Source: Hypanus sabinus
Taxonomy: Eukaryota
Assembly (NCBI RefSeq): GCF_030144855.1
Contig: NC_082730.1
Coordinates: forward strand, 14,446,001-14,510,000
Length of the DNA stretch: 64,000 nt
Direction: 5' to 3'
Position numbers and translations under genes: made by a program. Under the pieces are notes generated by a model. It ran no database searches and was not told where the DNA came from. It worked only from the letters and a program-made list of their open reading frames with translations. Positions 4,141 to 63,353 of the stretch are shown in pieces; the stretch's first letter is position 1, and each line of letters opens with the position of its first letter.

Positions 4141-4160
4141 ATAGATAGATAGATAGATAG
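4141..4160 (+). repeat. (ATAG)5 microsatellite at the SINE tail
   Basis: Read directly. The paralog at 60598-60629 has 8 units, one of them GTAG. Confidence 0.9.
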
Positions 4161-4169
4161 ACAATGAAA

Positions 4170-6829: not shown

Positions 6830-6884
6830 CTGTGGAAAGGAATTCAACAATCAGGCACTGAATAAACACCTGAAAATCAAGTAC

Positions 6885-10374: not shown

Positions 10375-10745
10375 ACTCACTAGAGTTTAGCAGAATGAGG
10401 GGGGATGTCATTGAACTCGATTGAATATTGAAAGGCTTAGTGAGAGTGGATGTGGAGAGGATGTTTCTTGCAGTAAGTGAGTCTACTACCAAACAGCACA
10501 GCCTCAGAGTACATGAACATTCCTATAGAATAGAAATAAGGAAGAATTTCTTTAAACTTAGGGTGGTGAATCTGTGGAAATCACTGACACAGATGGTTGT
10601 GAAGGCCAAGTCATTGGATGTATTTAAAGTGGAGGTTGATAGGTTCTTGATTCGTAAATGCATCAAAGGATACAGGGGAAGGCAGGAGAATGGGGTCGAG
10701 AATGTTTAATTCTGAGCGCATGCCTTTTGGGTCTTATGGTCTTCT
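10375..10745 (+). mobile_element. CR1/HER1-like LINE 3' fragment
   Basis: ORF 10428-10709 (MKGLVRVDVERMF...FFKLRVVNLW) is the CR1 ORF2 C-terminus; 'cttatggtctt' tail. Confidence 0.8.
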
Positions 10746-13700
10746 AATACAGGCACCAGTCTGGTGAATCTCTTCTGCAACTTGAATTCTTGAATGCTCA
10801 TTGATCGTCCTATACCAGACACCCTCTTCAACACCTACTTTACCATGTCCCTCTGTTCTGAATCTCGGGGAGTTATGGACTTGCACCCCAGGATTGGTAC
10901 ATCGTTCTGGACTTGCCTTGATAATACAATCAAACACGAGGAAGACATGACGTGAGTCCTGATGAAGTGATTCAGCCTGAAAGGTCGATTGTTTACTCTT
11001 TTCTATAGATTCTGCCTGGTTGGTTGAAATCCACCAGTGTTTTCCCTGTGTTGCCATAATTTTTGAGAACTTGCTGCTGAGGAGGGAGCAAAGTGGGAAA
11101 TGGGTGTGGTGTAGAAGGGGCTTTTTATGCAAACTCAACATTCATACTTGGCTTCATTCTCTCTCCTCTTTGAACCTTGAAAGCTCATCTCTTCTGAATT
11201 CTATTCCATCTGTCAGTGTAATTTGGAGACCTCTGATGGGATTTCACTTTGCTTCAGTTAGATGTGTTGGGAAAACCTACTGAATGGAATTGCACATTCA
11301 CACTGGTGTAAAATCCACATCAAATCCACTCTTAAAGGAAATCAACTCCTTTTGACTGTAAATGATCTGTGTGAGTAGCCAACCCCTGTAGCTTTTATTT
11401 CCCACAGAATAATAGAGCACTGTAAATAACACTCACAAAATGCTGGTAGAACACAGCAAGCCAGGCAGCATCTATAGGGAGAAGCACTGTCAACATTTTG
11501 GGCCAAGACCCTTCATCAGGACTGTAAACGGACAGTTAACACTTGTCAAATGAGAGAACATTTATATCTTTCCTATCTCACTCCCATGGTTTTGCTGACA
11601 CCTGAAACTGCACACCTTTGCTTACCTTCTCAGTAGCTAGCTTTCCAATATCTCTGTTCATCTGGTTAGATCTTTCAATGTTACTCTAAGTGTGCTCTAT
11701 CCAGGTTTATGCTGTACGATTCCCTGGGGCAGATGAAGTCTGAGTAGGGCTTCAGTAGAAGGTAAAACAATTCTCACATGTCACACATATTGGAGAAGTA
11801 ATTCAGAATCAAATCTATGAAACCTTGACTATCTAAATCAATTCCATTGATGCTGACTGTCCTGCTGTTTTTCTCCAGCATTTTCTGTCTGTTGCTTTTG
11901 ATTTCATTGGAATTTGAGGATTGAAGCGGTCCAAGAATGTGGCTGATTTATTTTATTTGCTCATTTTGCTTTTGTTTATAAACACTTAATTTCACATTGT
12001 ATAAAATAGATAAAAGATAAAATAATTCAGTATACATAAAGAGCTTTTGTTACATTTGTTTTAGGGGAAAACAGTGGAGTATATCAGCCGTGAATGTATA
12101 CCTGCTTAAATTCTGTACAAGTCTAGTATGAGTGCTATTTCTATTGTATTAGTCACAGCTGCCATCTGTTTAACGTTCACCTTTAGCAAAGGATGTGGTT
12201 AGAACATCTGTCTAATTCATATGTCTTGCCAAACAGAATATAGAGAAATATAAACGGATGTCACACATTGAGGGATCGTTCCTGTCTCTACATACAGACA
12301 TGGCCCGTGTGAGAAGCGAGAGCCACTGAAGTGGGTCAATAGTTCACAGACTTTTATGTGAACAGAGATAGAGGGTACAAAACAATAAACACAAAGCCAA
12401 GCAGGACTGTTAGCTAAAACCCTCAAATGAGAAACAAAGACAACACTGCTCTGAAAGGAATAATTGAGTGTAAAACGTATACTGCTGGTCTTCAGAGTCA
12501 GTTGACCCGATAGGCTAGGCTGAATGGAAACAGGCAACGAAACATTGCTGTGCTTTGCTCACGTCTCAACAAGCACTAAGATGAAAAGAATGGACTTAAA
12601 TGCCATCACAATTAAATGATAATTAACTGACATGTGCATATTCACCAGCACCACTGCTATCTCTGCTACAATGCTGAGTCCATGTTGTGACAGTTCTGGT
12701 CTCTTCCTGCATTGCCCCATCTTGGAAAACTTCTCAACAACCATGGTTCAATATGCTGATGAGAACAAGTGCAGAGATATAAAGCATCTTCAGCAATACA
12801 TTTTTGTTTCAGCAACAAGATCAATAAACAATAACAATATAGCAAAAAAAAGTGAAAAGGCCATTGTGTTTAATCTTAATTCTAGTCCTCTTCAGACCTG
12901 TAAATACAACGGTGGGATTGAAAAACGTTTTCCATTCTGTTGTTGAGAAGTTATCCAAGAGCTGTAGTGTTATAGGTTATTGACCGGACTGGACTTGGGA
13001 TATGGTGAACTGTATTGAGCCTCTTCTCTTCGAAAGGATGTGCTGTAGATGGAGAGGGTCCAGAGCAGTTTCCCAAGAACAACCCAGAAAGGGTTAATGT
13101 ATCAGGCATGTTTGATGGCTCTGGGCCTGTATTAGCTGAAGTTTAGAAGAATCACAGGGAGGGGATGGTTCTCATTGAAGCCGCTTCAATGTAAAAGGAC
13201 AAAAACCTCGATATAGTGCAGGGAGAGGATGTTTCCCATAGCGGGAGAGTCCCTGACAGGAGGCTACTGATATGTGGAATTCATTGTCACAACAGTTGTG
13301 GAGGTGGGGTGGGGGGCAAGTCATTTGGTACTTAGTAAGTGCAGGTTTATAGGTTTTTGATGAGTAAATATATGTCAAATTTATGGGGACAATAGGATTG
13401 AGGGGCATAATAAATCAGCCATTATACAATGAGGAACAGAGTCAGTGGGCTGAATGGCCTAATTCTCCCCCTATATCTTATGGTCTGAAGTGATTGGACA
13501 ACGCAGAGGGAGAGTGGACCAGTGAGTTTATGTGAGGCATACATTGGTACTTCCATTTATTCTGGTTTGTAAGATAAGTAAAGAGCACAGAAATTCTTAT
13601 GGTACCTTTTGAGAATTGCATTGGGATTTCCTCACACAGGGAAAGTTTCTCTTTCAGAATTAGAATCAGGTTTATTTTCACAGTCTTCTGATGTGAAATT

Positions 13701-14160
13701 TGTTGTTTTGTAGCAGAGAAACACAAAGCAAGTTCCTTCTTTCAGAACATTAACGAGCTCCGGTTTAACAAGTCAGATCACTGCTCCTGGCGTTATCTGC
13801 AGCTAATCAATACCCATCAGATAACCTTGAGCTGAAGAGGTCAAGAGCTCCAAACAGACTCTGGTGTTACCATTTCACATCCTCACCGGGCAGGTGAAGA
13901 ATATGATGTGATGTTTCTCCTTGTGATGGGGCATTTCAAAATTCAATATTGTAATTAAATTTATTTTCAAAGTCCATATATCTCGCCATTACAACCCTAA
14001 TTTTAATTGCAAAAATGCAGTTCACATTCTCTCATTTTCAAGACCCTTTATTGTACATTCATGGGTAACAGTCACAGATCAGTACTGAGAAAAGTTACAC
14101 CTTCCATTTGCAGATTCACACCCTGATGACCGATGCAAGCTGCAATAATTTGCAACTCAC

Positions 14161-14264
14161 TCATTTTATTCAGCACCAACTTTTATCCCCATTGCTTGAC
14201 TCCTTTACGACCTCTGTACAGTGACCAGAAAATGTCATGCTAGAGTCTCTTTCTCAATCCATTT
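14161..14264 (-). other. Exon-like cassette W, copy A (104 nt; premature TGA from a +1/-1 frameshift pair)
   Basis: Branch-like tactgac, acceptor cattttgtag|AAA, donor TGA|gtgagt. Phase 0 reads KWIEKETLA*; the ancestral frame resumes as ...QAMGIKVGAE*. Confidence 0.55.
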
Positions 14265-14926
14265 CTACAAAATGCATTGTGATAGGTCAGTAATCATGCT
14301 CCTTATCAATGTTCAAAATCTACCTGGTAAATTTATGATCAATTACATTAATATCACCATATCCTCCCCTGGGATTCATTTCCTTGCAGACATTCACAGT
14401 AGGACAAGGAAATACAACAGAATCAATGAAAACGACACACAGATATGGAGAAACAAACAATGTGCAAAAGAAGACAAATTGCGCAAACACAATAAATAAA
14501 TAAATAAAACCACGACCGTGAGTTGTAGAATCTGTAAAGGTGAGTCCAGAGGTTGTGTTCAGAGATCATTTCAGTGTTGAGGTGACTGAAGTTATCCACC
14601 CTAGTTCAGGAGCCTGATGATCCTGAACATATTGACATGGGTCTTGAGGATCCTGTCCCTCCTTCCCATTGGCAGCACTGACAAGAGAGCCTGTTTGGAT
14701 GATGTGGGTCCTCGATGATGGATTCTGCTCTCTTGTGGCAGTACTCCTTTGTAGATGTGCTCACTGTGGGCTGGGCTTAACCTATCAACTGATCAGATCA
14801 GTCTTAACCAACCTCCACACAGACCATCCCTGAATAATGAATAGGTCTGTTTATACAGGTGCCTATAGTCAATTTTACTCGTAAGTCAGAAAACACAATG
14901 GATATCACTCTATATATTATCCATAC

Positions 14927-14986
14927 CTCCATAGTATTGTAATGGCAGGCATCAACTGCATATAAAACTGAGACAAAAGAGTCATT
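14927..14986 (-). other. Exon-like cassette X, copy 1 (60 nt, phase 0-0): NDSFVSVLYAVDACHYNTME
   Basis: Acceptor ttttctttctctccacttttcag|, donor GAG|gtatgg. Confidence 0.6.
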
Positions 14987-15029
14987 CTGAAAAGTGGAGA
15001 GAAAGAAAACTAGTTCTGTTACTTGTAGG

Positions 15030-15660
15030 AACATAGAACATAGAACATACAGCACAGTACAGGCCCTTCAGCCCACAGTGTTGTGCTAATCTATACCCCA
15101 TGATCAGACTAGTCCTTCCCTGCTACACAGCACACGACCCTCTATTTCCATACATATATGTAGGTGCATATCTAATAGCCTCTAAATGTCCTTATCATAT
15201 CAGCCTCTAGTACCATGCCTGCAATGTGTTCCAGGAATCCGCCACTCTCTGTGTAAAAAAAATTATCTCTTACATCTCCCCTAAAATCTCCTCCACTCAC
15301 CTTAAATGGATCTCCTCTGGCATTGGTCATTGTCACCATGAGAAAGAAGTTCTGCTTGTCCACTCAACCTATGCCTTATACACCTCTTCTGCAACACTCT
15401 ATCAAAATATCTCCCACCTTCCTTTGCTCCAGAGAGAAAATCCCTGGCTCACTCAACATTTACTTTTCCTCATAAGACATGTTCTCTGATCAAGGAAGCA
15501 TCTTGGTAAACCTCCACTGCACCCTCTTTGTTTCATTTCCCAATACCAAATCAAGTACAGCCTCTCCTCTTGTAGGCTTATCTACATAAGATGAATTGTG
15601 AGACGGGCATGGCATTTTTACAAGTAACAGAGTGTGAAGAGGTATATTCCAGGTAGCTGT
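15030..15660 (-). mobile_element. CR1/HER1-like 3' end (agaacatag tail) plus an adjoining CR1 fragment
   Basis: 'aacatagaacatagaacat' is the reverse complement of a (CTATGTT)n tail; ORF 15172-15363 (..RGDPFKVSGG..). Confidence 0.75.
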
Positions 15661-15689
15661 GAATATCCCTGGGTATATAATAGACATCG

Positions 15690-16500
15690 GTAGTAAAACT
15701 GTCACCAGAGATAGAGAGATTGAGAAAGGCGAGGGAAGCGTTGGAAATTATCCAGGTAAATTTGAGGGCAGGGTGGAAGTTGGAGTCAAAGCTGATGATG
15801 TCATCAAGCTCTGCATGGATGCAGGAAGCAGCACCAATGAAGTCACCGATGTAGTGTAGGAAAAGTGGAGGATGGACACTAGTTTAGGCTTAGATCATAG
15901 ACTGTTCCACGTAGAGAACAAAAGGGCAAGCATAGCTGGGACCCATGTGAGTGCCATGGAAACACATTTTGTTTGAAGGAAGTGGGAAGAGCCAAAGGAG
16001 AAATGATTAAGAGTGAGGTTCAAGTTCCATTAGACAGTGGAGAGAGGGGCTGGAGGGGAATGGTTGGGTTTGGTGTCCAGAAAGAAAGAGAGAGCTTCTG
16101 GACCATCCTGTGAGGGGAAGGATGTACAGTATATAGGGACTGGACAGCCACAGTGAAACTAAGATGATGGGGGGCAGGGAACGTGAAATCATTCAAAAGA
16201 TCCAGAGCATGTGAAGTGCCACAGATATAGGTAGGAAGGGACTGAACTAGAGGGGATAATGCAGAGTTGAAGTATACAGATTTGAGCTGAGTGGGGATGG
16301 AACAATCTAAAACAATGGGTCTCTATGGACAAGCAGATTTGTGGATCTTGGATAGGAGGTAGCAACAGGAGGTTTGGGGTGTGGGAACTATGAGCTTGGT
16401 GGCAATGTATGGGATATCAACAGAGCTAATAAGCTCAATGATGGTGTGGGCTCCAGAGAGGGATCTTGTTCAAGGGGTATGTAAAAGGAGGTGTCTGAGA
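15690..16500 (-). mobile_element. Penelope-like element, RT fragment
   Basis: Minus strand encodes HMGPSYACPFVLYVEQSM and FLHYIGDFIGAASCMHAELDDIISFDSNFHPALKFTW, degenerate PLE RT motifs. Confidence 0.7.
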
Positions 16501-16555
16501 AATGTTGCCCTTTATTCAGATAACGTAACAAATATCACTGAATATGTATCAATAC

Positions 16556-16615
16556 TTCCATGATATTGTAATTAAAGACATCAACTGCATATAAAACTGA
16601 GAAGAAAGAGTAATT
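16556..16615 (-). other. Exon-like cassette X, copy 2 (60 nt): NYSFFSVLYAVDVFNYNIME
   Basis: Acceptor ttttctttctctccacttctcag|, donor GAA|gtattg. Confidence 0.55.
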
Positions 16616-16689
16616 CTGAGAAGTGGAGAGAAAGAAAACTAGTTCTGTTATTTGTAGAAAGAACATATATCAGTACAGCACATTACGGG

Positions 16690-19600
16690 CCCTCCGCTTC
16701 TACATTGCCTTTAGCACTCTATATTTGTACTGGACTCCAACACTTTGCCAGCTATTGAGGTTAGGCTAACTGACCTATGATTTCTTTTCTTTTGCCTCCT
16801 CCCTCTGAAAGAGTGGAGTGAAATTTGCATTCTTTCAGTTCTCCAAGACCATGTCAGAATCAAGTGATCCTTGAAAGATCATGACAAATGCATTTGTTAA
16901 CACTTCAGCAAATTCTCTCAGGTCTCTGGGATGTAGGCCATTTATTTCAGGTGATTTATCCACCTTAACACTTCTGAATTTGCCTTGCAATTTTCCTTTG
17001 TACTGGCAATGGCACTCACTCCTGCTCCATGACTCTCACGGACCTCTGGCGCACTGTTAGTGTCTTTCACAGTTAAGATTGATGTAAACTAACCATTAAG
17101 TTCATCTGCCATTTCTTTGTTCCCCATTACTACCTCAGCAGTATCATTTTCCAGTGGTTCAATATCAACTCTCACCTCCGTTTTACTCTTGATATAACTG
17201 AAAAAACTTACAGTACCCTGCTTTATATTATTGGATACTTTGCCCTCATTTTTCAGCTTCTCCCTTCTTATAACTTTTTCAGTTGCATTTTGTTGGATTT
17301 TAATAACTTCCCAATCATCCAACTGCCCACTCAGTTTTGCTACCTTTGCTTTTATGCAGTCCTTAACTTCCCTTGTCAGCCACGCTTGTCTACCCCTGAC
17401 ATTTAAGAATTTCTGTGGGACATATCTATCCTGCGCCTTGTTAACTATTCCCAGAAACTTCAGCCACCTCTGCTCTGCTGTGATCCCTGCCAGTATCTCT
17501 CTCCAATCCACCTGTACAAGCTCCTCTCTCATGCCTCTGTAATTCCCTTTATTCCATTGCAATACTGATAGAGAAATGCTTCTCCCTCTCAAATTGTAGT
17601 ATGATTTCAATCATATTATGATCCTAAGGGTTCCTATGCCGTAAGTTCCTAATAAGATCTGGATTATTACACAGCACCCAAAGTAAGATAGTGTTTCCCC
17701 CAAGTAAACTCAACCACCAGCCTCTCTAAAAAGCCGTCTCTTAGGGATTCAAGAAATCCCCCCTCTTGCGATCCAACATCAAACTACTTTTGCCAATCCA
17801 TTAGCATATTGAAGTCCTTTTGCATATTGAAGGCTTTCTTTACCCTTGCAGTTTGTTAATGCCGCTCATAAAGTTTCAACATTTTCTGACCCTGTCACGT
17901 GTTTCTAAAGAAGTAATTCCATCTCTTACCAACAAAGTCAGAGAGCATTTAACTGGAGTAAGGAGAAATATGAGGTTATCAGGCGGGAGCTTGGAAGCAT
18001 AAACTGGAAACAGATGTTCTCAGGGAAACATATGGAAGAAGTGAGGCAAATATACAGGGGATATTTGTGTGGAGTTCTGCTTAGGTATGTTCCAATGAGA
18101 CAGGGAAAGGATGTTCGGGTACAGGAAATGTGGTGTACAAAGGCCGTTGTAAATCTACTCAAGAAGAATAGCTTACAAAAGGTTCAAAAAACTAGGTAAT
18201 GTTAGAGATCTAGAAGAGTGGTTGTAGACGGGTCATATTCTGTGTGGAGGTCGGTGACCAGTGGTGTGCCTCAGGGATCTCTTCTTGGACCCCTACGCTT
18301 CATGCTTTTTATAAATGACCTGGATGAAGAGGTGGAGGGATGGGTTAGTAAATTTGCTGATGACACAAAGGTTGGGGTTCTTGTGGGTAGTGTGGAGGGC
18401 TGTCAGAGGTTACAGCGGGACATTGATAAAATGAAAAACTAGGCTGAGAAGTGGCAGCTGATGTTCAACCCAGATAAGTGTGAGGTGGTTCATTTTGGTA
18501 GGTCAAATGTGATGGCAGAATATAGTATTAATGGTAAGACTCTTGGCAGTGTGGAGGATCAGCGGGATCATGGGGTTCTAATCCATAGGACTCTCAAAAC
18601 TGCTGTGCAGGTTGACTCTGTGGTTAAGAAAGCATGCAGTGCATTGGCCTTCAACAATCATAGGATTGAGTTTACGAGCTGAGAGGTAATGTTGCAGCTG
18701 CATAGGATCCCTGGTGAGACCCCACGTGGAGTACTGTGCTCAGTTATTGTAGCCTTACTACAGGAAGGGTGTAGAAACCATAAAAAAGGTGCAAAGGAGA
18801 TTTACAAGGATGTTGCCTTTTTTTTGGGCTTGCATATCAGAATACATGGAGTGAATGCGGCCTTTTCTCCTTGGAGCAATGGAGGATAAGAGGTGACCTG
18901 ATAGAGGTAGATAAGATGATGAAAGGTATTGAACATGTGGTTAGTCAGAGGCTTTTCCCCAGGGCTGAAATGGCTAGCACAAGAGAACACAGTTTTGAGG
19001 TGATTGGAAGTAGGTACAGAGGAGATGTCAAAGGTAAGATTTTTATGCAGAGAGTGGTGAGTGCACGGAATGGGCTGCCGGCGACAGTGGTGGTGGCGGA
19101 TATGATAGGGTCTTTTAAGAGACTCCTATCTATGTACATGGAGCTTAGAAAAACAGAGGACTATGGGTAACTCTAGGTAATTTCTAAGGTAAGGACATGT
19201 TCGGCACAGCTTTGTGGGCCAAAGGGCCTGTATTGTACTGTAGGTTTTCTATATTTCTATGTTTCTAGACCAACAGCTATGCCTCCCTGCCTGTCTGTTC
19301 TTTGATATGAAGTTCCCAAATATAACCTTCTTTCAGCCACACCTCAGTGATGCCCACAATGTCATTCCGACCAGTCACTAATTGCGGCATGAGTTCATCC
19401 ACATTTTTTTGAATACTACCTGCATTTAAGTCCAGTACCTTCAGTCCTGCATTCTTCACCCTTTTGAATTTTGACTCTGTGGTACAATTTAACTGCATTT
19501 GTACTGATTCATTGGCTTGTCTTCCTCACATTCATATTACATCCATCATCTACTTGTAAACTTGCTGGCTCATCCTCAGGTCTATCATACTGTTTCTCAT

Positions 19601-20780
19601 CCCCTGCCACATTAGTTTAAACCACTCCCAACAGCTTTAGGAAACCTGCCTGAAAAAATATTGGTCCACCTTGGATTCAAGTGCAACACATCCCTTTTGT
19701 ACAGTCACACCTGCCCCAGAAGCGGTCTCAATGATCCATAAATCTGAATCCCTGCCCCGTACTCCAAACTCTTCAGCTGCACATTTATCTGCCCCCTCAT
19801 TCTATTCCTATCCTCAATGTCATGTGGCACAGCCTGAAATATCAAGATTACCACCATTGAGGTCTTGCTTCTCAGCTTCCTTCCTAACTCTTTGTATTCT
19901 GTTTTCACCTCCCTCTTTCTACCAATGTTGTAAGTACCAATATGTAGCACAACTTCTGGCTGCTCAGCCTCCTTTTTCAGGATATTGTTGATGCGTTCAG
20001 AAACATTGTGGACCCCTGGTACCTGGGAGGCAAACAAACATCTGTGTTTCCTTATAGCATCGACAAAATTGATTATCTGTCTCCCTAACTTTAGATTCCC
20101 CTATCACTACTGCCTTCCTCTTCATTTCCCTATCCTTCTGAGCCACAGGGCCAGACTTAGTGCCAGTGACATGGCTGCTGTTGTTTCCCCCAAGTAGTTC
20201 TACCAAACCAACAGTACTAAAGATGATGTACTTATTGTTGAGGGGAATGTCCACAGTGTTGCACTCCAGTATCTGACATTTTGCCTTCCCTCTATTGACT
20301 GTCATCCATTTACCTGTCTCCTGTAGAGTTGGGGTGACTCCCTCCCTATAACTCCTGTCTATCACTTCTTCACTTTCCCGAACAAGCTGCAGATATGGAA
20401 ATCCTATATCTGACACCCAGAACAGAACACTGCCCCTGCAGATATAGCCACTATTCTTTCAAGAGTAAATAAGAAAAGGAATAAGAAATAAACTGACCTA
20501 CTTCAATTGCTTCTGCTCGTTGTTGCTGAAGCCTGTCAAGCCAAAGCCTTACCACTCTGACTCAGACCATTCCAAAGATGACTGCTCCACCTGGATGACA
20601 CCACTCTTGTATGAAAATGAGCTTTTCCAAGTCCTGCTCCGGACCTGTGCAGAATGTTTCTACTGTGTCTGCTCGTCTTTCCAGTCAGTGATTCCTGCTG
20701 AAAAATGGCTGCCTTATCAAGCTCCGCTCTGGACATTTGTGGAAGTGCTTCTACTGCATCTGTGCCACTTTCCAATTAGA
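16690..20780 (-). mobile_element. CR1-clade LINE retaining its 5' part (ORF1 SGNH esterase, ORF2 endonuclease), interrupted by a plus-strand CR1
   Basis: ORF1-like KAVVIGESKVRETD..CLPG and PEVVLHIGTYNIG (19705-20416); EN start LNAGSI..DIVGITEVWL (19277-19498); continuation 17089-17610 (WNKGNYRGMREEL..). Confidence 0.8.
17820..19268 (+). mobile_element. CR1/HER1-like LINE, RT to 3' tail, nested in the minus-strand CR1
   Basis: VTSGVPQGSLLGPLRFMLFINDLDEEVEGWVSKFADDTK (18218-18442); tail tttctatatttctatgtttcta. Confidence 0.9.
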
Positions 20781-23700
20781 GAAATTGGAGATATTTGAAG
20801 TGGAGGTATATTCATTCTTGATTGGTAAAGGCAACAAAGGTAATGAGGAGATGGCAGGAGAATGAGTTTGGGAGGGCCTAATTCTGCTCTTATGCCTTTT
20901 GGTCATATGGGCTTCTAATACACACGCCAATCTGGTGAATCTCTTCTGCAACATGAATTCTTGAGTGTTCAATGGTCGTCCAATGCCATAGGCCCTCTTT
21001 ACCACCTACTTTACCATCTCCCTCAGTTCCAAATCTCGGGGAGGTATGGAATTGCACTCCCAGATTTGTACATCATTCTGGACCTGCCTTGGTGACAATT
21101 CAGTCAAACACGAGAGAGGAGAAAGACATGACATGAGTCCTGATGAAGGGTGTCAGCCTGAAATGTCAACTATTTGCTCTTTTCCAGAGATTCAACCTGG
21201 CCTGCTGAGTTCAGCATTTGGCATGTATTGCTATAATTTTTGTGAATTTGCTGCTGTGGGGGAAGCAAAGTAGGAAATAAGTGAGAGGTTGAAGGGGCTT
21301 TTCATGCAAGCTCAGCATTCACACTTGGTTTCATTCCCGCTCCTCTCTAAAGGATGATTTTGCTCTTTGAAGGTATCTTTAAAGCTCATATTCCGTCTGT
21401 CGGTGCAATTTCCAGAGCTCAGATGGGATTTCACTTTGCTTCAGTTAGCTGTGATGGGAAACCTTCTGAATGGAATCCTACATTCACAATGGGTAAAATC
21501 CATGTCAGATCTGTCCTTTAACCAAATAATGTCTATTTTGACAGGACATTAGCTGTAATGGTCTGAATCCTCGAGTATCTGTTCATTTCCATAGATTCTG
21601 CCCGACCTGCTGAGTTCCTCCAGTATTTTGTGTGTGTTGCTTTTGATTTCATTGTAGAGCGAGGGTTGAGGTGATCCAAGAATATTCAACATTTATTTTT
21701 ATGAATTTTAGTTGCTGACTTAGCAATTGTTTAAAAACACTTAATTTCACATTGATAAAAATAGAAATGATAAAAATAATTCAGAATACACAGAGAGCAT
21801 TTGTGACTTTGGGTTTATTATTTTGGGTGTATAAGATAATGAGAGGCATTGATTGCGTGGCTAGTCAGAGGCTTTTTTCCCCAGGGCTGAAATGGCTGGC
21901 ACGAGAGGGCACAGTGAAAAGGTGATTGGAAGAAAGTGCAGTGGATATATCAGGGGTATGTTTTTTACACAGAGAGTGGTGAGTGCATGGAATGGGCTGC
22001 CGGTGACGGTGATGGAGATGGATACGATAGGGTCTTTTAAGAGACTCCTGGAAAGGTATATGGATCTCAGAAAAATAGAGAGCTATGGGTAACCCTAGGT
22101 AGTTTCTCATTTAAGGACATGTTTGGCACAGCTTTGTGTGCCAAAGTGCTTGTATTGAGCTGTGGGTTTTCGATGTTTCTATTACATTTGTTTTAGGGCA
22201 AATCAGTGCAGTATATTAGCCATGACTGTACAGGGTATATCTGGTTAAATTCTGTACATTGTATAGCATGAGTGCTGACTCTATTTCATCAGTCACTTCT
22301 GTCATCAGTGTAATGTTCACACTCAGTGAAGGATGTGGTCAGAACTTCTATCTTCTTTACTTGACTTAAAAAACAGACTCTAGAGAAGTGCCAATGGATG
22401 CTACACGTTGACCTATTGCTCTGATCTCTTCCTGCATTGCACCATGACTTCTTGGAAAGCTTCTCAGACTTCTCAAAACTTCTTCTCAAAACACTCCTCA
22501 AAACTTCTCAAATACTTTGGTTCAATATGCTGATGAGATGCAAAACATCTTCAGCAAAGCATTTCTGTTTCAGCAGCTAGATCACTCAACAACAATAACA
22601 ATTCTGTGAAGAAAAGTGAAAAGGCCTTTTATATTTGCTTTTAATCCTAATCCTAGTCCTGTGCATTACTGTAAATACAATGGTGGGACCTTAAAATGCT
22701 TTCCATTTGGTTATTGAGATGATATCCTAGAACTGCAGCTTTAGAAGGCATTGGTCAGACCACACTTGGAATATAGTGAACAATTCTGGGCCTCTTGTGT
22801 ATTAAAGGGTGGGTTGTAATTGGGGAGGGTCCCAGGAGTGAAAGGGTCAATGTATGAGGAGTGTTTGATGGCCTGGGCTTGTACTCATTGGAGTTTAGAA
22901 GAATGAGGGGTGTTGTCATTGAAACCTCTTCAGTAGTGAAGGCCCAAATCCTGGATGGCGTGTATGTGGAGAGGATGTTTCCTGAAGTGTGGGTGTATCG
23001 GAGCAGAGGGCAAAGCCTCAGAATAAAAGACATCCCTTTATAACAAGGGTGAGAAGGAATTAATTTTGTCAGAGGATGCTGAATCTGTGAAATTCATTGC
23101 CACAGACAGCTGTGGAGGCCAAGTCATTGTGTGTATTTAAATTGGAGTTTGATAGGCTTTTGATTAGTAAGGGTGTCAAAAGTTATGAGCTGAATGTGGT
23201 TGAGGGTGGTAATAAAACAGCCATTATAGAAGAGCAGACCAGACTGAATGGGCTGAATAGCCTATTACTATTCCTATGGTCATTTTGTCTTCTGGTCTTC
23301 TGGTCTTAAGAGATGGAATAATGAAGGAAGAGTTTGGTACAATTTGTTTACATGAGGCATCCATCAGTTCTTCCCTGAATCTGTTTTGTAAGAGAAGTAA
23401 AAAGAATACAAGTTCCAGGCATCTCCTTTGTGATTTGCTTTGGGACGTTCTTGGAAAGGGAAAGGGTCCCTTTCAGAATCAGAATCAGGTTACTGTCACT
23501 GTCTTCTGATGTGAAATGTCTTTTTTGCAGCAAAAACAAAGCATGTCCATTCCCTCAGACCATTAGGGAGCTCAGGATTAACAAATCGAGATTTGCATGT
23601 CCGACCAGTGCATCTGCAATTAGCTTCGGATAATCAACAGCATGAGGTAACGTTGACCTGAAGATGCAACAAGCTCCAAACAGAGTCTGGTGTTACTGCT

Positions 23701-23954
23701 TCCCATCCTCACAGAGCAGGTGAAGGATATTGTGTCACATTCCTCCTTGTTAGTTATGTATTTCAAAGTTCAAAATTCAAATTAGGTTGATTATCAAAGT
23801 ATAATACATAAAAGTGCAGTTCACTTCTCTTACTTTCAAGACTATTGTACACTCATGGGTGACAGTCACAGATCAGTACTGAGACAAGTTATGCCTTCTA
23901 TTTGCAGATTCACACCCTGATGACCAATGCAAGCTGCAATAATTTGCAGCTCAC

Positions 23955-24059
23955 TCATTTTATTCAGCACCCAACTTTCATTTCCATTGCTCGTTCTCCT
24001 TTAAGACTTTTGTACAGTGACTGGAAATTTTCACCCTGTTTCCCTTTCTCACTCTGTTT
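23955..24059 (-). other. Exon-like cassette W, copy B (105 nt): KQSEKGKQGENFQSLYKSLKGERAMEMKVGC*
   Basis: Acceptor tattttatag|AAA with tattgac upstream; donor TGA|gtgagc. Confidence 0.55.
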
Positions 24060-24179
24060 CTATAAAATATGTTACGAAAGGTCAATAATCATGCACATTA
24101 TGAAATTTCAAAATGCACATGGTCAATTTATTAACAAAGTATGCTAATGTAGGGCTCTCAGTACCATTATCTGTGGCAT

Positions 24180-24630
24180 TAACTGCTCAGGCCAACAAAA
24201 TGGCTTCTCTGTATTGCTATAATGAAATGGTTTCTCTATAATGTTTCTTAATGCCGTTATGAGTGTCTGTTACAGGAATGTTTGGTATAACTGCGGTTAA
24301 GGGGGGAACTAACCAATGGAGAATTGTTATGCTGTCTTGTATGTGTGAGCTGGGCGGGAGCTTGCAGTCCTTTTCTGGAGGCAAGCAACGAGGACAGACA
24401 TGTGAGGAGCGGACAGCGGTTCCAGGGCAGCGGTTACTGGACGTCGACGGTTCGGACGGTGGCCGAAGGCTCGGAAGGTCATTGTGGATTGAACCGCAGG
24501 TGTGAGCTCCAAAGTATTGAACTATTATGTGCACAAATTTATAAACTTACAGATTTGGCGCCTTTAGTTTATCTGTTTTGACTAACCGTTCACAAACAAA
24601 TAACCATAAAATTGTAATTATTTAAAAGCC
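24180..24630 (+). mobile_element. Solo-LTR-like insertion, specific to block B
   Basis: CpG-rich 450-bp segment absent from blocks A and C, with CCAAT and GGGCGG boxes; LTR termini not clearly defined. Confidence 0.45.
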
Positions 24631-25376
24631 CCTTTTATTCCCACTTACTGACTCCTGCTTGTCAGCCATTTTGCTATCCATGCCAATATCTTTACTGTAA
24701 CACCACAGGATTTTACCTTGTTAATCAGCCTCGTGTGCGGCACCTTATCAAACACCCTCTGAAAATCCAAATAAATGACATCCACTGCCTCTCCTTTGTC
24801 CACCCTCAAAGAAGTCTTGTCAGGCAAGATTTCCTTCACAGAAACCATGCTGAATTTGACATGTTTTATCATTAGTCTCCAAGTACCTCAACACTCATCC
24901 TTAATAATGGACACCAACAGTTTCCCAGCCACTGAGGTTTGGCTAATTGGCCAGATATTATACTGAGAACATGAGTTGTAGAGTCCTTGCAGGTGAGTCC
25001 ATAGATTGTGTTCAGTGATCATTACATTGTTGGAGTGCCTGATGTTATCCACCCAGGTTCAGGGGCCTGATGCCTGCACTGTTCCTGAGACCTAGGGCTC
25101 CAGTACCTCCTTCCTGATGGCAGCAGCGAGAAGAGAGCATGCTTGGATGATGTGGGTCCTTTATGATGGACTCTGCCCTCTTGTGCAGATGTGCAATGTG
25201 TAGATGTGCTCATTGGTAGGCTGGGCTTTACCAATCAACTGATCCGATTACTCTAAACCAGTCTCCATACAGAGCATTCCCGAGTAATGAATGGTTCTGT
25301 TTTTACAGATGCCTGTTCATCAATATTGCCTGCAAAGCAGAAAACAGACAATTGTCACTGAATATGTTATCTATAC

Positions 25377-25436
25377 CTTCATGGTATTGTAATGGAAGGC
25401 ATCAACTACATATAAAACTGGGACAAAAGAGAAATT
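25377..25436 (-). other. Exon-like cassette X, copy 3 (60 nt): NFSFVPVLYVVDAFHYNTMK
   Basis: Acceptor ttctccccacttttcag|, donor AAG|gtatag. Confidence 0.55.
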
Positions 25437-25479
25437 CTGAAAAGTGGGGAGAATATAAATTAGTTCTGTTATTTGTAGG

Positions 25480-26560
25480 AACATAGAACTGTACAGCACA
25501 GTTTGAGTTCTTCGGCCCACACTGTTGCGCCAATCGATACTCCATGATCAATCTAATCCTTCCATCCTACAAAGCCTGTGACAGTCTGTTTCCAGACATA
25601 AATGTATGTGCCGATCTAAGAGCCTCTAAATGTCCACATCGTATCAGCCTCTGCCACCATGCCAGCAGTGCATTCCATGAACTCAGCAATGTGTAGTAAA
25701 ACTTGTATCTTACACCTCCCCTGGGACAAAAGACACTCAAAGCCGCTGCACAGGTTGATTCTGTGATTAAGAAGGCATATGGTTCATTGGCCTTCATCAA
25801 CCAGTTTAAGAGCCAAGAGGTAATGTTACAGCTAAGTAGGACCCTGGTCAGACCCCACTTGGAATACTGTGCTCAATTCTGGTCACCTCACTAAAGGAAG
25901 GATGTGTAAACTATATAAAGGGTGCAGAGGAGTTTTACAAGGATGTTGCCTAGATTGGGGAGCATGCCTTATGAGAACAGCTTGAGTGAACTTGGCCTTT
26001 CTCCTTAGATTGGCAATGGATGAGATGTGACCTGATAGAGGTGTATAAGATGAGATGCATTCATTGTGTGAATTATCAGAGGCTTTTGCCAGGTAATTTC
26101 TAAAGTACGTACATGTTTGGCACAGCATTGTGGGCTGAAGGGCCGGTATTGTGCTGTAGTTTTTCTATGATGTATGTCTAAACTGCCCTCCACTCACCTT
26201 AAATGGATGTCCTCTGATATTGGTCATTGTCACCATGAGAAGGAACTGCTGCCTGTCCACTCGGTCTATGCCTTATACACCTCTTCTACATCACTCTACC
26301 AAGTTATTTCTCACCCTCCTTTGCCCAAAGAGAAAATCACTGGCCCACTCCACATTTACTTTTCCTCATAAGACGTGTTCTTTGATCCAGGCAGCATCTT
26401 GGTAAACCTCCTCTGCACCCTCTCTGAAGTTTCCTCAACTAACCAACAATGAGACAATCAGAACTGCACTAAATTCTCCAAGTGTGATTGAACCAGAGTT
26501 TTATAGAGTGTAACGTTACCTTGTGGCTCAGTCTTGTTCATGTGTAGAAGTGTCCAAATG
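25480..26560. mobile_element. Minus-strand CR1 3' end with a plus-strand CR1 3' fragment nested at ~25735-26170
   Basis: 'aacatagaac' tail; LKAAAQVDSVIKKAYGSLAFI...RPHLEYCAQFWSPH; 'ttttctatgatgtatgtcta' tail. Confidence 0.75.
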
Positions 26561-26992
26561 TCAGGAATTTTCAACCTGGGAATGAATTCAATAGTCTTTT
26601 ATCCTACACATCATACCCCCAACAGATCTGCTTTTTAAACTGACATTCTTCCACTCTTAACCTAGATCTGAGGAGTGGTGCCTGACCTGAAACTGTGTTT
26701 AATGAAAGGACCCTGTTATGGTTATGGCTCCAAAACTATAAACAAATTCAACAGAAAATGAGAAAGCTAAGAAATGTGAATCTCAGTATGTGTTTTTACC
26801 ATGTGAGGCTTGCACGTAAATGTGGTATTATCCTGAAATAGGCAACTCTAGTCTTTTACTTATAAACTGTAATGAATTATTGCAACAAACAAGAATGCAT
26901 AATCAGTATTTACAATATTGTTTAATGTTACATTGTCAGGCTGCAACTAGCGTATATCAACAGGTTGGAGCCCATAACCCAGAAAGGATGTG

Positions 26993-29775
26993 TTGTCATT
27001 GGAGAGAGTCCATTCTTGAAAGTTTCCCAAGAATGATTCTGGGAATGAAGGGGTTAATATATGAGGAGCATATTACAGCTTTGGACCTGTACTCAATTGA
27101 ACTTAAAACAATGCATGGGGATCTCATTGAAAACTATCGAATGTTGAAGGGACTAGATAAGGTGGATGTGGGTAGGATGTTTCCTATGGTGGGGTTATAT
27201 AAAACTCGAGGGCACATCCTCAAAATTGAGGGCTGTCCTTTTAGAACAGAGGTAAGGAGGAACAGAGGTAAGATAACTCTCTTTTGGCTAGAGAGTAGTG
27301 AATCTGTAGGTATTGTTAAGGTGGATTTTGAGAGGTTCCAGATTGGTCAGGGCATCAAAGAATATGACAAGAAGGCAGGTGTCTGGGTTGAGTGGGATCT
27401 GGGATCAGCCATGCTGGAATGGCAAAGCAGCTTCAATGCGCTGAATATTCTAATTCTGGTCCTATGTCTTATGGACTTATGGTGTTATCTCTTCTTTAGC
27501 AGAGTACCAAAACTGAACATAATACTCCAGGTGTCATCTCACCAGTTCTCTTGTACAAATGAAATATCATATTCCAACTTATCTACTCTGACTGATGCCT
27601 AAAGTCTTCTTCACTGCCTGTCCACCTCTGACTACACGGTCCAGGAACCATGTACTGAATTCCAAGATCCCATTGTTCTTTAACACTTCCTCGGGCCTGA
27701 CCGAGCTCTGAGAAAGTCTGACTTGATTTGATTTTGGAAATGGAAAACTCAGCCCATATCTGAACTGCACTCTTTTTGCTATTACATAGCCCAAATGGCC
27801 AGCAGATCAAGTTCCTGTGTAGTTCTTCAAAATTCTGTTTACTGTCTAAAGAACTACCTGTCTGAGTGTCATCTACAAATGACACATTGTTTTCATTGAA
27901 ACTTTGGTTAACCCAACAGGTTGTTACATTCTGCTAATTGCTCTTCCAGGAACCTATGAGTCAGTGTACATCAGTGAATATCACAGCGAGGGGAAGCTGT
28001 ATCTTGGGGTATGGCAAATACACAAGTGTAATTCATTTCAGAGTATGGGATGAGATTAATGATGGAGCAGTCATGGAGAATACAGCATGACAATTCTTTC
28101 AGTGTAGGAATTGAATCTAATATCCTAAAAATTAACAGGATAAGAAGAAACTAGGCTTGCTCTCCTTGGAGCTTATGGGGTTAAGAATGGATATGATTGA
28201 GGGGTGTAACATTATGAAATGTACCGTGTTTATAGACAACAAGGAACTTTCCCATTCTTGGAGATGACATAGATTTAGAAGGGATTTGAATGAATTGTTT
28301 TTACCCAGAGACTGGTGGAAAAAGAGTCAAGTCAGTGCTTGTGAAGTGCAGAATGACATCTTCAGTCACATCTACATAGAAAGCTTTGGGCCATGTTTGG
28401 GAAGATAGGGTTTATATACAGTGCTGAGTAAATGTCTTCAGCACATGTAAAATAATGCTGTAAGATGAAGATACTTTCAAAAATAATGAAATGAGAAGTT
28501 TCTAAATAACACAAAAATGCTATAAAGAGTAGGAAATAGAAAAAAAAACTAAAAGAAATTCAGTATTGGGTATGGCAACACTTTGCCTTTAAACATACAT
28601 CAGTTCTCTTAGATACCCTGTTGAGAAGTTGTATAATAAAGTTGTCTGGTAGTTTGTCCCAAGCATCATAGAAAACTTGCCACGGTTCTTAATTGGCTTG
28701 CTGACATTTTATTTGCTGATAAACACTTAATTTCACATTGTTTATAAATAGATAAATGATAAAATAATTCCGTGTACACACAGAGGTTTTGTTGTTACTT
28801 TGAGTTTTTTTTACAGTTGTTTTAGGAGAAAACAGTGCAGTTTGTTAGCCATTAATGTGTATCTGCTTAAATTCTGTACTTTCTATGGTACGAGTACTGA
28901 CTCTATTGCATCAGCTACTCCTGTCATCTGTGTAATGTTCACCCTCAGCAAAGGCTGCAGTGAGAAGTTCCGTCTTCTTTATTTATCTTAAGAAAAAAAT
29001 ATAGAGAAGTGCCAATGGATGCTACATAGAAATAAATGGTTCTGTCCTCTTTTTGCATTTCTCCATCACTTCTTGGAAAACATTTCAATAACTGTGGTTC
29101 AATATTCTGATGAGAACAAATGTAGAGATAGATCTTTAGTAAAGTATCTTTGTTTCAGCAACTAGATAACTGACCAACTATTTGGTGAAGAAAAGTAAAA
29201 TGGCTATTTTACCGTTGTTTTTAAACCTAATGCCAATTGTGTGCACACTGGTGGGATTGTAGAACGTTTACCACTCTGTTGCTGACAAGTTATCCAAGAA
29301 CTGCAGCTTTATAGGTTATTGGTTAGACTGCACTTGGAATATGGTGAACAGTTTTGTGCCTTTTATCTTCAAAAGGATGTTTTCTAACTGGAAAGGTGAC
29401 CAAAGGAGGTTCCATAGAACGACCCAGCAATGAAAGGGTTAATGTACGAGGAACGTTCAATGGCTGTTGAGCTGTACTCACTGGAGTTTCGAAGAATGGT
29501 GGAGGTGGGGGGAGGAGTTCTCATTAAATCTTTTGTACTGTGTACCGAAGGACCAGGAACCTAAGTGAAGTGTATATGGAGAGGATGTTTCCTGTGGTGG
29601 GTGATTTCCTGACCAGCAGGTGCTGATTCTTTGGATTTAATTCCACAGAATGCTGTGGAGGACAAATCATTGGATATATTTAAAGCAGGGTTTGATAGGG
29701 TTCTGATTAGTAAGCGTGTCAAAGGTTATGGGGAAAATAGGGTTGAGGGAGATAATAAATCAGCCATTAAAGAAT
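26993..29775. repeat. Segment duplicated at 41130-43911 (roughly 85-90% identical by eye)
   Basis: Colinear match from 'tcattggagagagtcc' to 'agaatgagga', covering CR1 pieces, unique sequence and modules U-V. Confidence 0.9.
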
Positions 29776-30215
29776 GAGGAACAGACTCAATGGGCTGAAT
29801 GGGCTCAGGTTTAACAGGTCCAGATTCATAAGTGGGAACACTGCATCTGGAATTATCTCTGGCTCACCAACATCCATCAGATAACCCTGAGCTGAAGATG
29901 TAATGAGCTCCAAACTACTCTGGTGTTACTGCTTCACCTCCTCACATAGCAGGTAAAGGATATTATGTGATATTCCTCCTTCTCAGTGAGGCATTTCAAA
30001 GTTCAAAATTCAAATTAATTACTGAACATGTGCACGTCACCGTATTGTACCCTGATTATAATGACAATCACGCAGTTCAGCTTCTCTCACTTTCAAGACC
30101 CTTTATTGTACACTCATGGGTTACAGTCACAGATCAGTACTGAGAAAAGTTACACCTTCCATTTGCAGATTCACACCATGATGACCAAAGCAAGTTGCAA
30201 TAATGAGCAGCTCAC

Positions 30216-30319
30216 ACATTTTATTCTGCTGCCAAACTTATTTCCATTGTTTGTTTTTCTTTAAGATCTTTGTACAGTGACCAGAAGTATTCATGATGTG
30301 TCGCTTTCCCACTCCATTT
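30216..30319 (-). other. Exon-like cassette W, copy C (104 nt): KWSGKATHHEYFWSLYKDLKEKQTMEISLAAE*
   Basis: Acceptor catcttgtag|AAA, donor GT|gtgagc; phase 0 is open for 32 codons, with TAA 5 nt before the donor. Confidence 0.6.
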
Positions 30320-30980
30320 CTACAAGATGTGTTTTGAAATGGCCATAATCACACACCTTATCAAATTTCAACATATATATACTAAATTTCTTATCAAAGT
30401 ACATTTATGTCGTCACATTCTACCCTGAGATTCATTTTCTTACAGTATGTCAAAGAAATACAATAGATTCAATGAAAACGGCACACAGATATGCACAAAA
30501 AACTATGTGCAAAGGAAGACAAAATGTGAAATACAATAAATAATAACTAAATAAATAAATAACACTCAGAATATGAATTGTAGAATCCCTGCAAGTAAAT
30601 CGATATGCTGTGTTCAGTGATTATTTCACTGTTGGGGTGAGTGAAGTTATTCACACTGCTTCAGGAACCTGATGGCTGAACTATCCCTGAACCTGGTCAT
30701 TTGGTATCGTACTTCCTTCCATTGACAGCAGCAGGAAGACAGTGTGTTTCGATGATGGGAGTCCTTGATGATAATCCTCCTGTCTTATGGCATTACTCCT
30801 CTGTTGGTGTGCTCACTGGAGAGCTGGGTTTTACCTGTTGATTGATCAGATCAGTCTTAACCAATCTCCATATTGACTGTCCCAGAGTCACGAATGGCTC
30901 TGTTTTTACTGATGCTTATAAGTCAATTTTACCCATATGTCAGAAAACATGACTGATATCACTCAGTATGGTGTCCATAC

Positions 30981-31040
30981 CTCCATGGTTTTGTAATGAA
31001 ATGCATCAACTGCACATAGAACTGAGAAGAAAGAGTAATT
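30981..31040 (-). other. Exon-like cassette X, copy 4 (60 nt): NYSFFSVLCAVDAFHYKTME
   Basis: Acceptor ttttcttcctttccacttttcag|, donor GAG|gtatgg; the ATG sits in ACCATGG context. Confidence 0.6.
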
Positions 31041-31719
31041 CTGAAAAGTGGAAAGGAAGAAAACTAGTTCTGTTATGTGTAGGAACAGAGAAAATGGAGA
31101 AGTACAGCACAGTACAGGCCCTTTGGCACACAATATTGTGCCACTGTATACTCCATGATCAATCCAATCCTTCCATCGTACATAGCCCATAATACTCTGT
31201 TTTTTTGTACTTGCATGTGTATGTCTGTCTGAGAGCCTCTTTGATGTCCGTTTTGCATCAGCCTCTACTACCGTGCCTGCATGGTATTCCAGGGACACCC
31301 CACTCACTGTGTAAAAAACAACTACCTCTTACACTTCCCCTAAATGTACCTCCACTCACCTTAAATCGATGTCCTCTGGGCTTGGTCACTGCCACCATGA
31401 GGAAGAGGTGTTGGTGTCCACTCAACCTATGCCTTATGCTGGACAATACTGATTGAAATGGAGTTTCATAGAGCTGTAACATTACCTTGTGGTTCGTGAA
31501 CTCAATCCCTTCGACGACTGAAGTTCAGCACAACATTCATGTTGCTTAACATCCTTTCAACTTGAGCAGCAACTTTGGGAAATCTACGGACTTGAACCCC
31601 AATAAACCTCTGTACATCTACATTGCTAATAATGCTGTCATTCAGCTTGTAATCTTTAAATTCAATCATCCAAAGTGCATCACTTCACATATTTCAGTGT
31701 TAAGCCCAGCAGCGTCTCT

Positions 31720-32360
31720 ACTTTTTGCGAAGGCTGAGGAAAGTTTATCTCCCACCCCCATCCTCATCACATTCTACAGGGGTTGTATTGAGAGCATCCT
31801 CAGCAGCTGCATCACTGCCTGGTTCAGAAATTGCACCATCCCGGATGGCAAGACCCTGCAGCGGATAGTGAGGTCAGCTGAGATCAGAGGGGTCTCTCTT
31901 CCCTCCATCACGGACATTTACACTACACACTGCATCCGCAAAGGAAACAACATTATGAAGGACCCCATGCACCCCTCATACAATCTCTTCTCCCTCCTGC
32001 CGTCTGGGAAAAGGCTTCAAAGCATTTGGGCTCTGAATGACCAGACCATGTAACAGTTTCTTCCCCCAAACGATCAGACTCCTCAATACCAGAAGCCTGG
32101 ACTGACACCTTGCCCTACTGTCCTGTTTATTATTTATTGTAATGCCTGCACTGTTTTTGTGCACATTATGCAGTCCAGTGTAGGTCTGTAGTCTAGTGTA
32201 GCTTTCTCTGTGTTGCTTTTTTTAATTACGTAGTTCAGTCTAGTTTTTTATACTGTGTCATGTAAACCATGGTCCTGAAAAATGTTGTCTCATTTTTACT
32301 ATGCACTGTACCAGCAGTTATGGTCAAAATGACAATAAAAGTTGACTTGATTTGACTTGA
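31720..32360 (+). mobile_element. Rex1/Babar-clade LINE 3' fragment
   Basis: ILITFYRGCIESILSSCITAWFRNC...LQRIVRSAE; tail aatgacaataaaagttgacttgatttgacttga. Confidence 0.8.
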
Positions 32361-33244
32361 AACTCCACCTACTACTTCTCCATCCATCACTGCATCCTGT
32401 CTCTATCCTGGGAATGAACTGTACAGAATTCACTCTTACACATCACTCTTCTGACCAGATCTGCTTTCTAAACTGACCCTCTACCACTTTATTCCAGATC
32501 TGAGGAGGAGACCCTGCCCTGAAACTGGGTTCAGTGATAGTTCGTGGCATGAAACATCTATGCATATTCCTTTCCATACATACTGCCTGATCTGCTGAGT
32601 CCTCCAACATTTGTGAGTGTTCCATCAGCATATAGGTGGAAGATAGAAAATCTGTCTGAATGGTTTCACAGCTAGCTCCCACACAACATCAGCAAAACCA
32701 AAGAGCTGATTATTGACCGCAGACGGAGTTATCCAGAGGTCATCAGGGCAATTATAAAGCAATCATGAGATTTTTTTTAAATCAAGAGTTTTTAAAATTA
32801 TCTTTCTTTGAGAAAAAGGTTGTGTGTATCCACCTAGATTTTTAAACATCTAGATGTAATATTAAAATGAAAAATATTTAAAATGAGCTACCTCTTCATG
32901 TCGAAGTTTGTACATCTATTGAATATGCTGTCCGAGAGAATGGTTGAGACAACAGCAACATTTAAGTGACACTTGGACAGCTCCCTGGATAGGGAAGGTT
33001 CAGTGGGATATGGGCCAAATGCAGGTGAATGTGTCTAGCTTAAATCAGCATCTCTCTCAGCATGATGGAGTTGGGATGAAGGGCTTATTTCTGTGCTGTA
33101 CTGTACTCCACTCTATTGTGCATTCGAGTTCCAATTACAGGTCAGCACTGAGAAAAGTATTTCCTATGATTTGTAGATTCACCCACCTGTGACTTGACCA
33201 TTGCACCTCACAACAAGATACAACTCACTCATTTTAGCAGTGCA

Positions 33245-33860
33245 ATTACTTGAGTCGAATTTCATGTTCTCCAAAGGGGTTATCTATTGATGGGTCCTCA
33301 GGTGACGGTAGAGGCTGATCCAGGAGTCACAAATTCTGGTGTAATGTGGGCAGGACTAAGTGGTGGGTATGGTTAGTTGTTGGGTTTTGGCTCAGTCTCT
33401 CCTTTCACACCTGCAGCTTGTTCTCTGTGACACAGTGGAGGTTTACATTCGTATAATGCATTTCCCTCTTGAACATGTTTCCTCTAAGTGAATCTGTTAA
33501 GTGCATTGTCTTCCCAGTTTTTAGATATAATCTTGAATTTCTTCAGGCTGATTTTAATATTATCTTTAAAGCTAACTTTCCTTCAACTGGGAGTAAAGGA
33601 TCTATCTGTCTGGGGAGATGTTTAGGCATCTCAATAACGTGACCTATCCATTGGAGTTGGTGTTGCTTTATCGTGGTGGAGATGCTGCTTGTGTTGGCTC
33701 CTCCAGTATGCTGGTGTTAGTGTGTCTGTCCATCCCGCTGATCCTCAGGATCTGTTATCAGGTCCTTTGGTGGCATTGTTCCAGGATTTTCAAATGTCTG
33801 CTCCATACAGTAATGTAGGAAGTACAAAGGTTTTGTTTAGACCTGTAGGTCACGTTTTGA
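33245..33860 (-). mobile_element. RTE-clade LINE 3' part (continues at 37650-38385)
   Basis: Minus strand reads FVLPTLLYGADIW and a C-terminal CPHYTRICDSWISLYRHLRTHQ*. Its 3' end truncates a partial W cassette (donor at 33229). Confidence 0.7.
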
Positions 33861-63298: not shown

Positions 63299-63353
63299 CT
63301 GTGGAAAGGAATTCAACAATCAGGCACTGAATAAACACCTGAAAATCAAGTAC

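Follow-up and report, generated by a model that had tools for sequence, protein, structure and literature searches.

Tandem ITIM-bearing tail cassettes between receptor copies of Hypanus sabinus: probable relics of MDIR-type receptor genes

Background

The window analysed here is a stretch of 64,000 nucleotides (nt) from Hypanus sabinus (contig NC_082730.1, positions 14,446,001 to 14,510,000), which carries copies of an immune-type receptor gene on its minus strand. One receptor copy ends at 46.8 kb and the leader of the next lies at 10 kb, and most of the 37-kb gap that separates them is taken up by an array of repeated minus-strand blocks, each full block holding a 60-nt module (X) followed by a second module (W). 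What do these blocks encode, or what did they once encode? An initial annotation had regarded them as an unrecognised unit, which could be either a small family of spliced genes or just the 3' ends of such genes. The latter alternative is retained here and the separate family is not, since W is homologous to the tail of an MDIR/CD300-like receptor (MDIR, modular domain immune-type receptor). The array probably consists of tandem 3'-terminal cassettes of MDIR-type (CD300/pIgR-like) receptor genes, most of which would be orphaned relics of gene birth and death.

Duplicated blocks in the gap

Self-alignment of the window confirms that the three colinear blocks of the initial annotation are real homologous duplicates. 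Blocks A (about 11957-15530), B (21564-26426) and C (28698-31437) are 70-77% identical, with a background Kimura two-parameter distance (K2P) of 0.29-0.32 among them. The coordinates of X and W, their AG/GT-type flanks and their translations, including the peptide quoted for block C, were all found to be correct, and the acceptor-like motif is present at 12755, 22529, 29106 and 43222. The copies of X and the partial copies of the block are as follows.

30981-31040, minus strand: X of block C (NYSFFSVLCAVDAFHYKTME), 60 nt, candidate cytoplasmic cassette exon of phase 0/0
25377-25436, minus strand: X of block B (NFSFVPVLYVVDAFHYNTMK), 60 nt, open in phase 0
16556-16615, minus strand: lone X copy, 60 nt, open in phase 0
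14927-14986, minus strand: X of block A (NDSFVSVLYAVDACHYNTME), 60 nt, open in phase 0
16516-16693, minus strand: fragment around the lone X, with only about 180 nt of block homology and no W after it
41129-43912, minus strand: block D, 88% identical to 26993-29780 of block C, only the part downstream of W
33111-33236, minus strand: remnant E, a decayed W end with the patch that follows the stop, 70% identical to block C

Block D is closer to C (K2P 0.12) and lacks X and W, in whose place, upstream, transposon sequence is found. Remnant E bears out the W remnant reported near 33229, since 33111-33236 and the sequence that follows W are 70% identical when aligned. By these alignments, blocks A, B and C, the partial copies D and E, and the lone X are old segmental duplicates. 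The AG/GT flanks that recur in them should not be counted as independent events, because they were inherited from one ancestor by duplication.

Module W and a receptor tail

Module W is AG/GT-flanked at 14161-14264, 23955-24059 and 30216-30319. It starts on a full codon, and its phase fits the transmembrane (TM) and cytoplasmic exons of the receptor. The copies in B and C are open in phase 0, with a stop 7-8 nt ahead of the GT.

30221-30319, minus strand: coding part of W in block C, 32 codons and TAA, with the immunoreceptor tyrosine-based inhibitory motif (ITIM) S-L-Y-K-D-L, homologous to the C-terminus of the Mobula protein P0006 described below
23964-24059, minus strand: coding part of W in block B, 31 codons and TGA, with the ITIM S-L-Y-K-S-L
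14161-14264, minus strand: W of block A, disrupted by an in-frame TAG and by one inserted nucleotide that B and C lack

A search for relatives with a stingray paralog returned 64 proteins, including the skate 'Modular domain immune-type receptor 2' (P0038) and many models named 'CMRF35-like', 'pIgR-like' or 'FcRL5-like'. The homology of W is to XP_062921369.1 of Mobula hypostoma (P0006), a V-C2-C2-TM receptor named 'Fc receptor-like protein 5 isoform X3' in RefSeq, whose C-terminus reads ...EKETRHEHFQSQYRGLKGEQGMEIKAGC. The W copy of block B reads EKGKQGENFQSLYKSLKGERAMEMKVGC and then stops; it matches P0006 in BLASTP with an E value of 4e-10, and the copy of block C with 3e-6. In tblastn the two match the C-terminal 28 and 23 residues of P0006, respectively (E values of 5.7e-7 and 7.6e-4), and the alignment of the block B copy runs to the stop in both (...KVGC-stop versus ...KAGC-stop). 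When the tail of P0006 is compared with the window by tblastn, the top four matches are the receptor TM exon, the W copies of B and C, and the receptor cytoplasmic exon, and the rest are much weaker. The order in the P0006 tail is TM (FMIWKVGRWLLFALL...), then RHNESDPHRLVHK, then the W-type tail, and its TM and cytoplasmic exons match the window at 47744-47654 and 46845-46807.

The W copies of B and C and the Mobula tail share the core F-x-S-x-Y-[KR]-x-L-K. This core contains the ITIM consensus (S/I/V/L)xYxx(I/V/L), as SLYKDL in C, SLYKSL in B and SQYRGL in Mobula; from the W of block A the motif is gone through the frameshift. What had been called an unrecognised unit thus includes a homolog of the terminal ITIM tail of an annotated MDIR/CD300-like receptor isoform, from the family to which the flanking genes also belong, and W may be taken as an ITIM-bearing coding exon of that family, presumably its terminal one. 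The supposed hidden family of genes is made up of tails of a known receptor family, which removes a false lead.

In a search of 1.84 billion cluster representatives with the P0006 tail, 12 relatives were matched and only P0006 has the W-type tail; no sister isoforms of P0006 were found in its cluster. The W tail is a rare variant, probably one of the stingray/manta lineage.

The flanking receptor and the missing partner exons

The flanking receptor was reconstructed on the minus strand with the help of related ray proteins, and its V-set and Ig domains were confirmed with Pfam.

9984-9949, minus strand: receptor leader, from related ray proteins
8150-7824, minus strand: receptor V-set exon, from related ray proteins and Pfam V-set
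6839-6510 (equal to 63308-62979), minus strand: receptor C2 exon, from related ray proteins
53510-53187, minus strand: second C2-type Ig exon, 83% amino-acid identity to Mobula P0001
49426-49346, minus strand: receptor stalk, from related ray proteins
47744-47654, minus strand: receptor TM exon (YVIWKVGRWLFFALLGIWTIAVTWFTRDKK), with a phase-0 end at AAG|gtaagt
46845-46798, minus strand: receptor short cytoplasmic exon (RHDQSDPHSLVHE-IK-stop), with AT at the place where a donor to W is needed

The TM exon ends in phase 0 with ...GAC AAA AAG|gtaagt, and the cytoplasmic exon starts at ag|AGA CAT. At the point where Mobula would have to splice to W, the 13-codon cytoplasmic exon has GAG|ATAAAG and not GT; the stop follows two codons on, and AATAAA-type hexamers lie about 85 nt beyond the exon. 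Because there is no GT donor to W, the stop comes two codons on and poly(A)-type hexamers follow, the receptor copy nearest to the array is, on the evidence of its exons, a short-tail form. The models of Hemitrygon and M. birostris likewise read through at the corresponding position of the cytoplasmic exon. GAG|ATAAAG looks like a lost donor, the loss of which would have fixed the short-tail form.

No remnants of Ig, TM, leader, cytoplasmic or start exons were detected in 12-45 kb, and a scan for hydrophobic segments found no TM exon in the blocks. Because similarity to Ig, TM or cytoplasmic exons is absent from 12-45 kb, the blocks are best described as fragments and not as complete genes. 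The D3 repeat (3932-4160 and 48155-48383) was considered as a TM exon and rejected, being without an open frame and similar to a short interspersed element (SINE).

The receptor locus itself is tandem-duplicated with a period of 56,455 bp, as positions 1-7531 of the window equal 56455-64000 at 99.2% identity in the self-alignment. This duplication could be a very recent tandem copy or a haplotype duplication in the assembly. It contains the receptor V and C2 exons and a long interspersed nuclear element (LINE) with long open reading frame (ORF) fragments (22-2772, equal to 56476-59226).

The end of W and the third module

The best-conserved part of the blocks is formed by the last 25 nt of W together with about 150 nt past the supposed donor.

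30070-30223, minus strand: post-stop patch of block C, with AATAAA over the stop and a second AATAAA at 30107, read as a 3' untranslated region (3'UTR)
23816-23963, minus strand: post-stop patch of block B, conserved between blocks
14015-14172, minus strand: post-stop patch of block A, conserved between blocks
28698-29106, minus strand: third module of block C, the acceptor-like motif and about 400 nt, indel-rich between blocks and non-coding

The three-way identity of the patch is 0.87-0.93, against a mean of 0.65, and its K2P is 0.08-0.11, against a background of 0.30. In each of the three W copies the stop is overlapped by an AATAAA (TGAATAAAATG); A and C have a second one about 120 nt further on, and the conservation stops about 30 nt past this second hexamer. 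Because AATAAA overlaps its stop, W is probably the terminal coding exon, and it would have poly(A) signals of its own and a 3'UTR that is conserved. A coding reading of the patch, as a 32-codon ORF, was rejected, as most of the differences are nonsynonymous and the frame does not stay open across W. The three sequences gave no compensatory pairs for a consensus fold, and Rfam matched nothing in the window. The summed depth of DNA from related rays over 29950-30149 is several-fold above the unique level.

The third module is possibly a 3'UTR exon. The caution of the initial annotation about the AATAAA positions was well placed, as the hexamers after this module are homologous only in C and D. 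Its model of X spliced to W and W to a third exon is borne out only in part: W looks terminal, the third module is indel-rich and non-coding, and neither a 5' exon nor a start is present in the blocks. The same evidence bears on the idea that X, W and the third exon make up an independent small spliced gene family unrelated to receptors. Three AG-flanked modules do recur in the same order and orientation, and the frame is open across X and W in B and C. However, W is homologous to a receptor tail, the third module does not code, and no first exon with an ATG was found upstream of X, where a transposon 3' end begins at 58 nt in A, B and C. Such an independent family is considered highly improbable.

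Conservation of W and X

The coding part of W has a K2P of 0.28-0.33, against the background of 0.30, and the copies of B and C differ by one synonymous and 18 nonsynonymous changes. Purifying selection on the W coding sequence is not seen in these values, and by this comparison the coding part of W diverges at a neutral rate. The initial annotation would have exons more conserved than their flanks. This is so for X and for the post-stop patch, but not for the coding part of W.

All four copies of X are 60 nt long without indels, open in phase 0, preceded by a pyrimidine-rich ...cag acceptor and followed by a GT donor. Their length and phase 0/0 fit the cytoplasmic exons of receptors, and either inclusion or skipping keeps the frame. 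It is therefore plausible that X is a candidate optional cytoplasmic exon, and it may once have been one in use. When X was compared by local alignment with the tails of inhibitory MDIRs, the scores fell inside the range of shuffled controls.

X could instead be a chance feature. If the array were neutral duplicated intergenic DNA, the frame and flanks of X would have been inherited with it and only W would have a genic past. The variable sites of X are evenly spread over the codon positions (6/6/6), and the ratio of nonsynonymous to synonymous rates (dN/dS), about 0.45, comes from very few changes. Frame 1 of X is likewise open in three of the four copies; X is without a homolog, and its three-way identity of 0.77 corresponds to the 85th percentile of 60-nt windows. 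But neutral drift sits poorly with four copies that have no indel and have kept a polypyrimidine-CAG acceptor and a GT donor, with a K2P of 0.13-0.21 in place of 0.30, and with a length and phase that match those of receptor cytoplasmic exons exactly. The neutral alternative is very unlikely.

Origin of the cassettes

A full cassette, as in A, B and C, would consist of an optional X, a terminal W with the ITIM S-x-Y-x-x-L about 660 nt beyond it, and a 3'UTR of about 150 nt that runs past a second AATAAA. The complete gene of the family, as modelled on XP_062921369.1, would run V, C2, C2, stalk, TM (with an arginine), 13-codon cytoplasmic exon and W, and as all cytoplasmic exons are in phase 0, X could be optional without a change of frame. 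The cassettes would have been detached from their receptor bodies through partial duplications and deletions. The fact that block D has transposon sequence in place of X and W would fit the loss of the receptor's own ITIM cassette.

The locus suggests that whole-gene units were duplicated and that their bodies were lost afterwards. Downstream of blocks B (20784-21817) and A (10613-12063) the DNA is 75-77% identical, and behind A it runs on to the leader exon of the next receptor. No leader exon was found after block B.

Are the cassettes still in use? They might serve as working alternative 3' ends, if the TM exon were spliced, with the short-tail exon skipped, to X and/or W of C or B at a distance of 16-33 kb. 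A short-tail receptor with an arginine in its TM (activating-type) would in this way be turned into an ITIM-bearing one, with variant tails on offer. Every junction needed for this is phase-compatible, W is intact with canonical ITIMs in B and C, the Mobula isoform joins the same type of TM to a W tail, the post-stop patch is strongly conserved, and good splice-like sites are kept in four of the four X copies. Set against this, the coding part of W diverges neutrally, B and C being separated by one synonymous change and 18 nonsynonymous ones; the receptor cytoplasmic exon lacks a donor and has poly(A) signals of its own after it; and in D, the first cassette behind the receptor, X and W have been lost. 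The RNA-like runs X12 and X13 contain 26% and 12%, respectively, of the sampled words of the TM/cytoplasmic stretch and neither contains block C, which is weak negative evidence, as the run type was guessed. The 26% in X12 is about the exonic share of the TM/cytoplasmic stretch. Working alternative ends are, on balance, unlikely. Quite unlikely, too, is a regulated bank of terminal cassettes, in which the choice of splice and poly(A) sites would give one arginine-TM MDIR receptor one of several diverged ITIM tails, to which the tyrosine-bearing X might be added, as a switch between activating-type and inhibitory forms, and in which the 150-nt element would steer this choice or the stability of the message.

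Relics are the more likely reading of the cassettes, because Ig, TM and leader exons are absent, the receptor has no donor, W drifts neutrally and the W of block A is broken. The cassettes would then be unused now, or at best rarely used as alternative ends.

Several observations weigh against this reading. Protein comparisons gave no homolog of X in 69 related proteins, P0006 included, and what speaks for X as an exon is its anatomy together with a modest conservation. P0006, the reference for the homology of W, is itself a RefSeq prediction. Even in the broken block A the post-stop patch shows strong conservation, which simple decay does not explain and which would call for constraint or gene conversion. 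The stop of W is directly followed by a strong GTGAGT and, 1.1 kb further on, by a conserved acceptor-like motif, so a spliced 3'UTR also fits.

For the cytoplasmic region of the family, the analysis gives the exon model TM, 13-codon exon, optional X and ITIM exon W. It also indicates how an inhibitory tail can be present on an arginine-TM receptor or disappear from it, at this locus apparently with the loss of one donor and of the adjacent cassette. Orphan ITIM exons of this kind may be attached wrongly to neighbouring genes by gene predictors.

Transposons and copy number

The possibility, raised in the initial annotation, that the blocks are a dispersed high-copy repeat is contradicted by the depth of related-ray DNA. 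The contigs that carry X and W (30646-31049 and 30124-30411) have a depth of about 20-35, as unique, single-copy DNA does, and are about 96-97% identical to the window and colinear with it through X and W. The neighbouring transposon parts reach summed depths of 1e5-1e6; the bin 30950-31149 has about 2e5 versus about 70 in unique bins.

31100-31440, minus strand: 3' end of a very high-copy transposon, which ends about 58 nt upstream of the X of block C

The same insertion is found upstream of X in A (about 15025-15530) and B (about 25475-26426), so that about 480 nt upstream of X which are seemingly part of the block are the transposon 3' end in A, B and C. Because this end sits 58 nt upstream of X in all three blocks, the insertion predates the duplications. 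A further old element is found between W and the third module.

An elasmobranch repeat with the core GTGGATGTGGAGAGGATGTTTCC occurs in many copies of both orientations, at 10436-10718, 22950-23231, 27042-27602, 29560-29774, 41182-41571, 43691-43906 and 54651-54980. Its tail, ...GGGCCGAAGGGCCTGTACTGTGCTGTA, is also found just upstream of every X. Summed depths in related rays go up to 1e5-1e6. The gap from C/E to D is filled by LINE fragments with endonuclease and reverse-transcriptase ORFs (33800-37230 and 39973-40524). A 120-nt piece of this gap appears to be recently active or recently duplicated, because 39967-40086 is 96% identical to 43921-44040.

Comparison with known systems

The closest known counterpart of the cassettes is Mobula XP_062921369.1. 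Its last 28 residues are 57% identical to W of block B, with a shared stop and the motif S-x-Y-x-x-L, and its TM (IWKVGRWLLFALL) and 13-residue cytoplasmic exon match the receptor exons of the window. Unlike the cassettes, it has no X-like segment and is a complete gene product, albeit a predicted model, whereas the W copies of the window are without Ig and TM exons.

The MDIRs of the clearnose skate, a family whose description is cited in PMC3031540, are related to CD300, TREM and pIgR. The skate protein P0038 has V and C2 domains of the CD300 type, as do the flanking genes of the window, and the MDIR family is likewise multigene, with activating and inhibitory forms. In contrast, MDIR2 has a long inhibitory tail with several ITIM-like motifs and a different TM, and no similarity of it to X or W was detectable.

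The mammalian clusters of paired receptors of the CD300, LILR and KIR types evolve by birth and death. They resemble the present locus in being tandem, in containing pseudogenes and fragments, in their short phase-compatible cytoplasmic exons, and in the opposition of ITIM tails to short tails with a charged TM. The stingray fragments differ from them in being specifically repeated 3' tail cassettes, probably out of use, within one intergenic gap.

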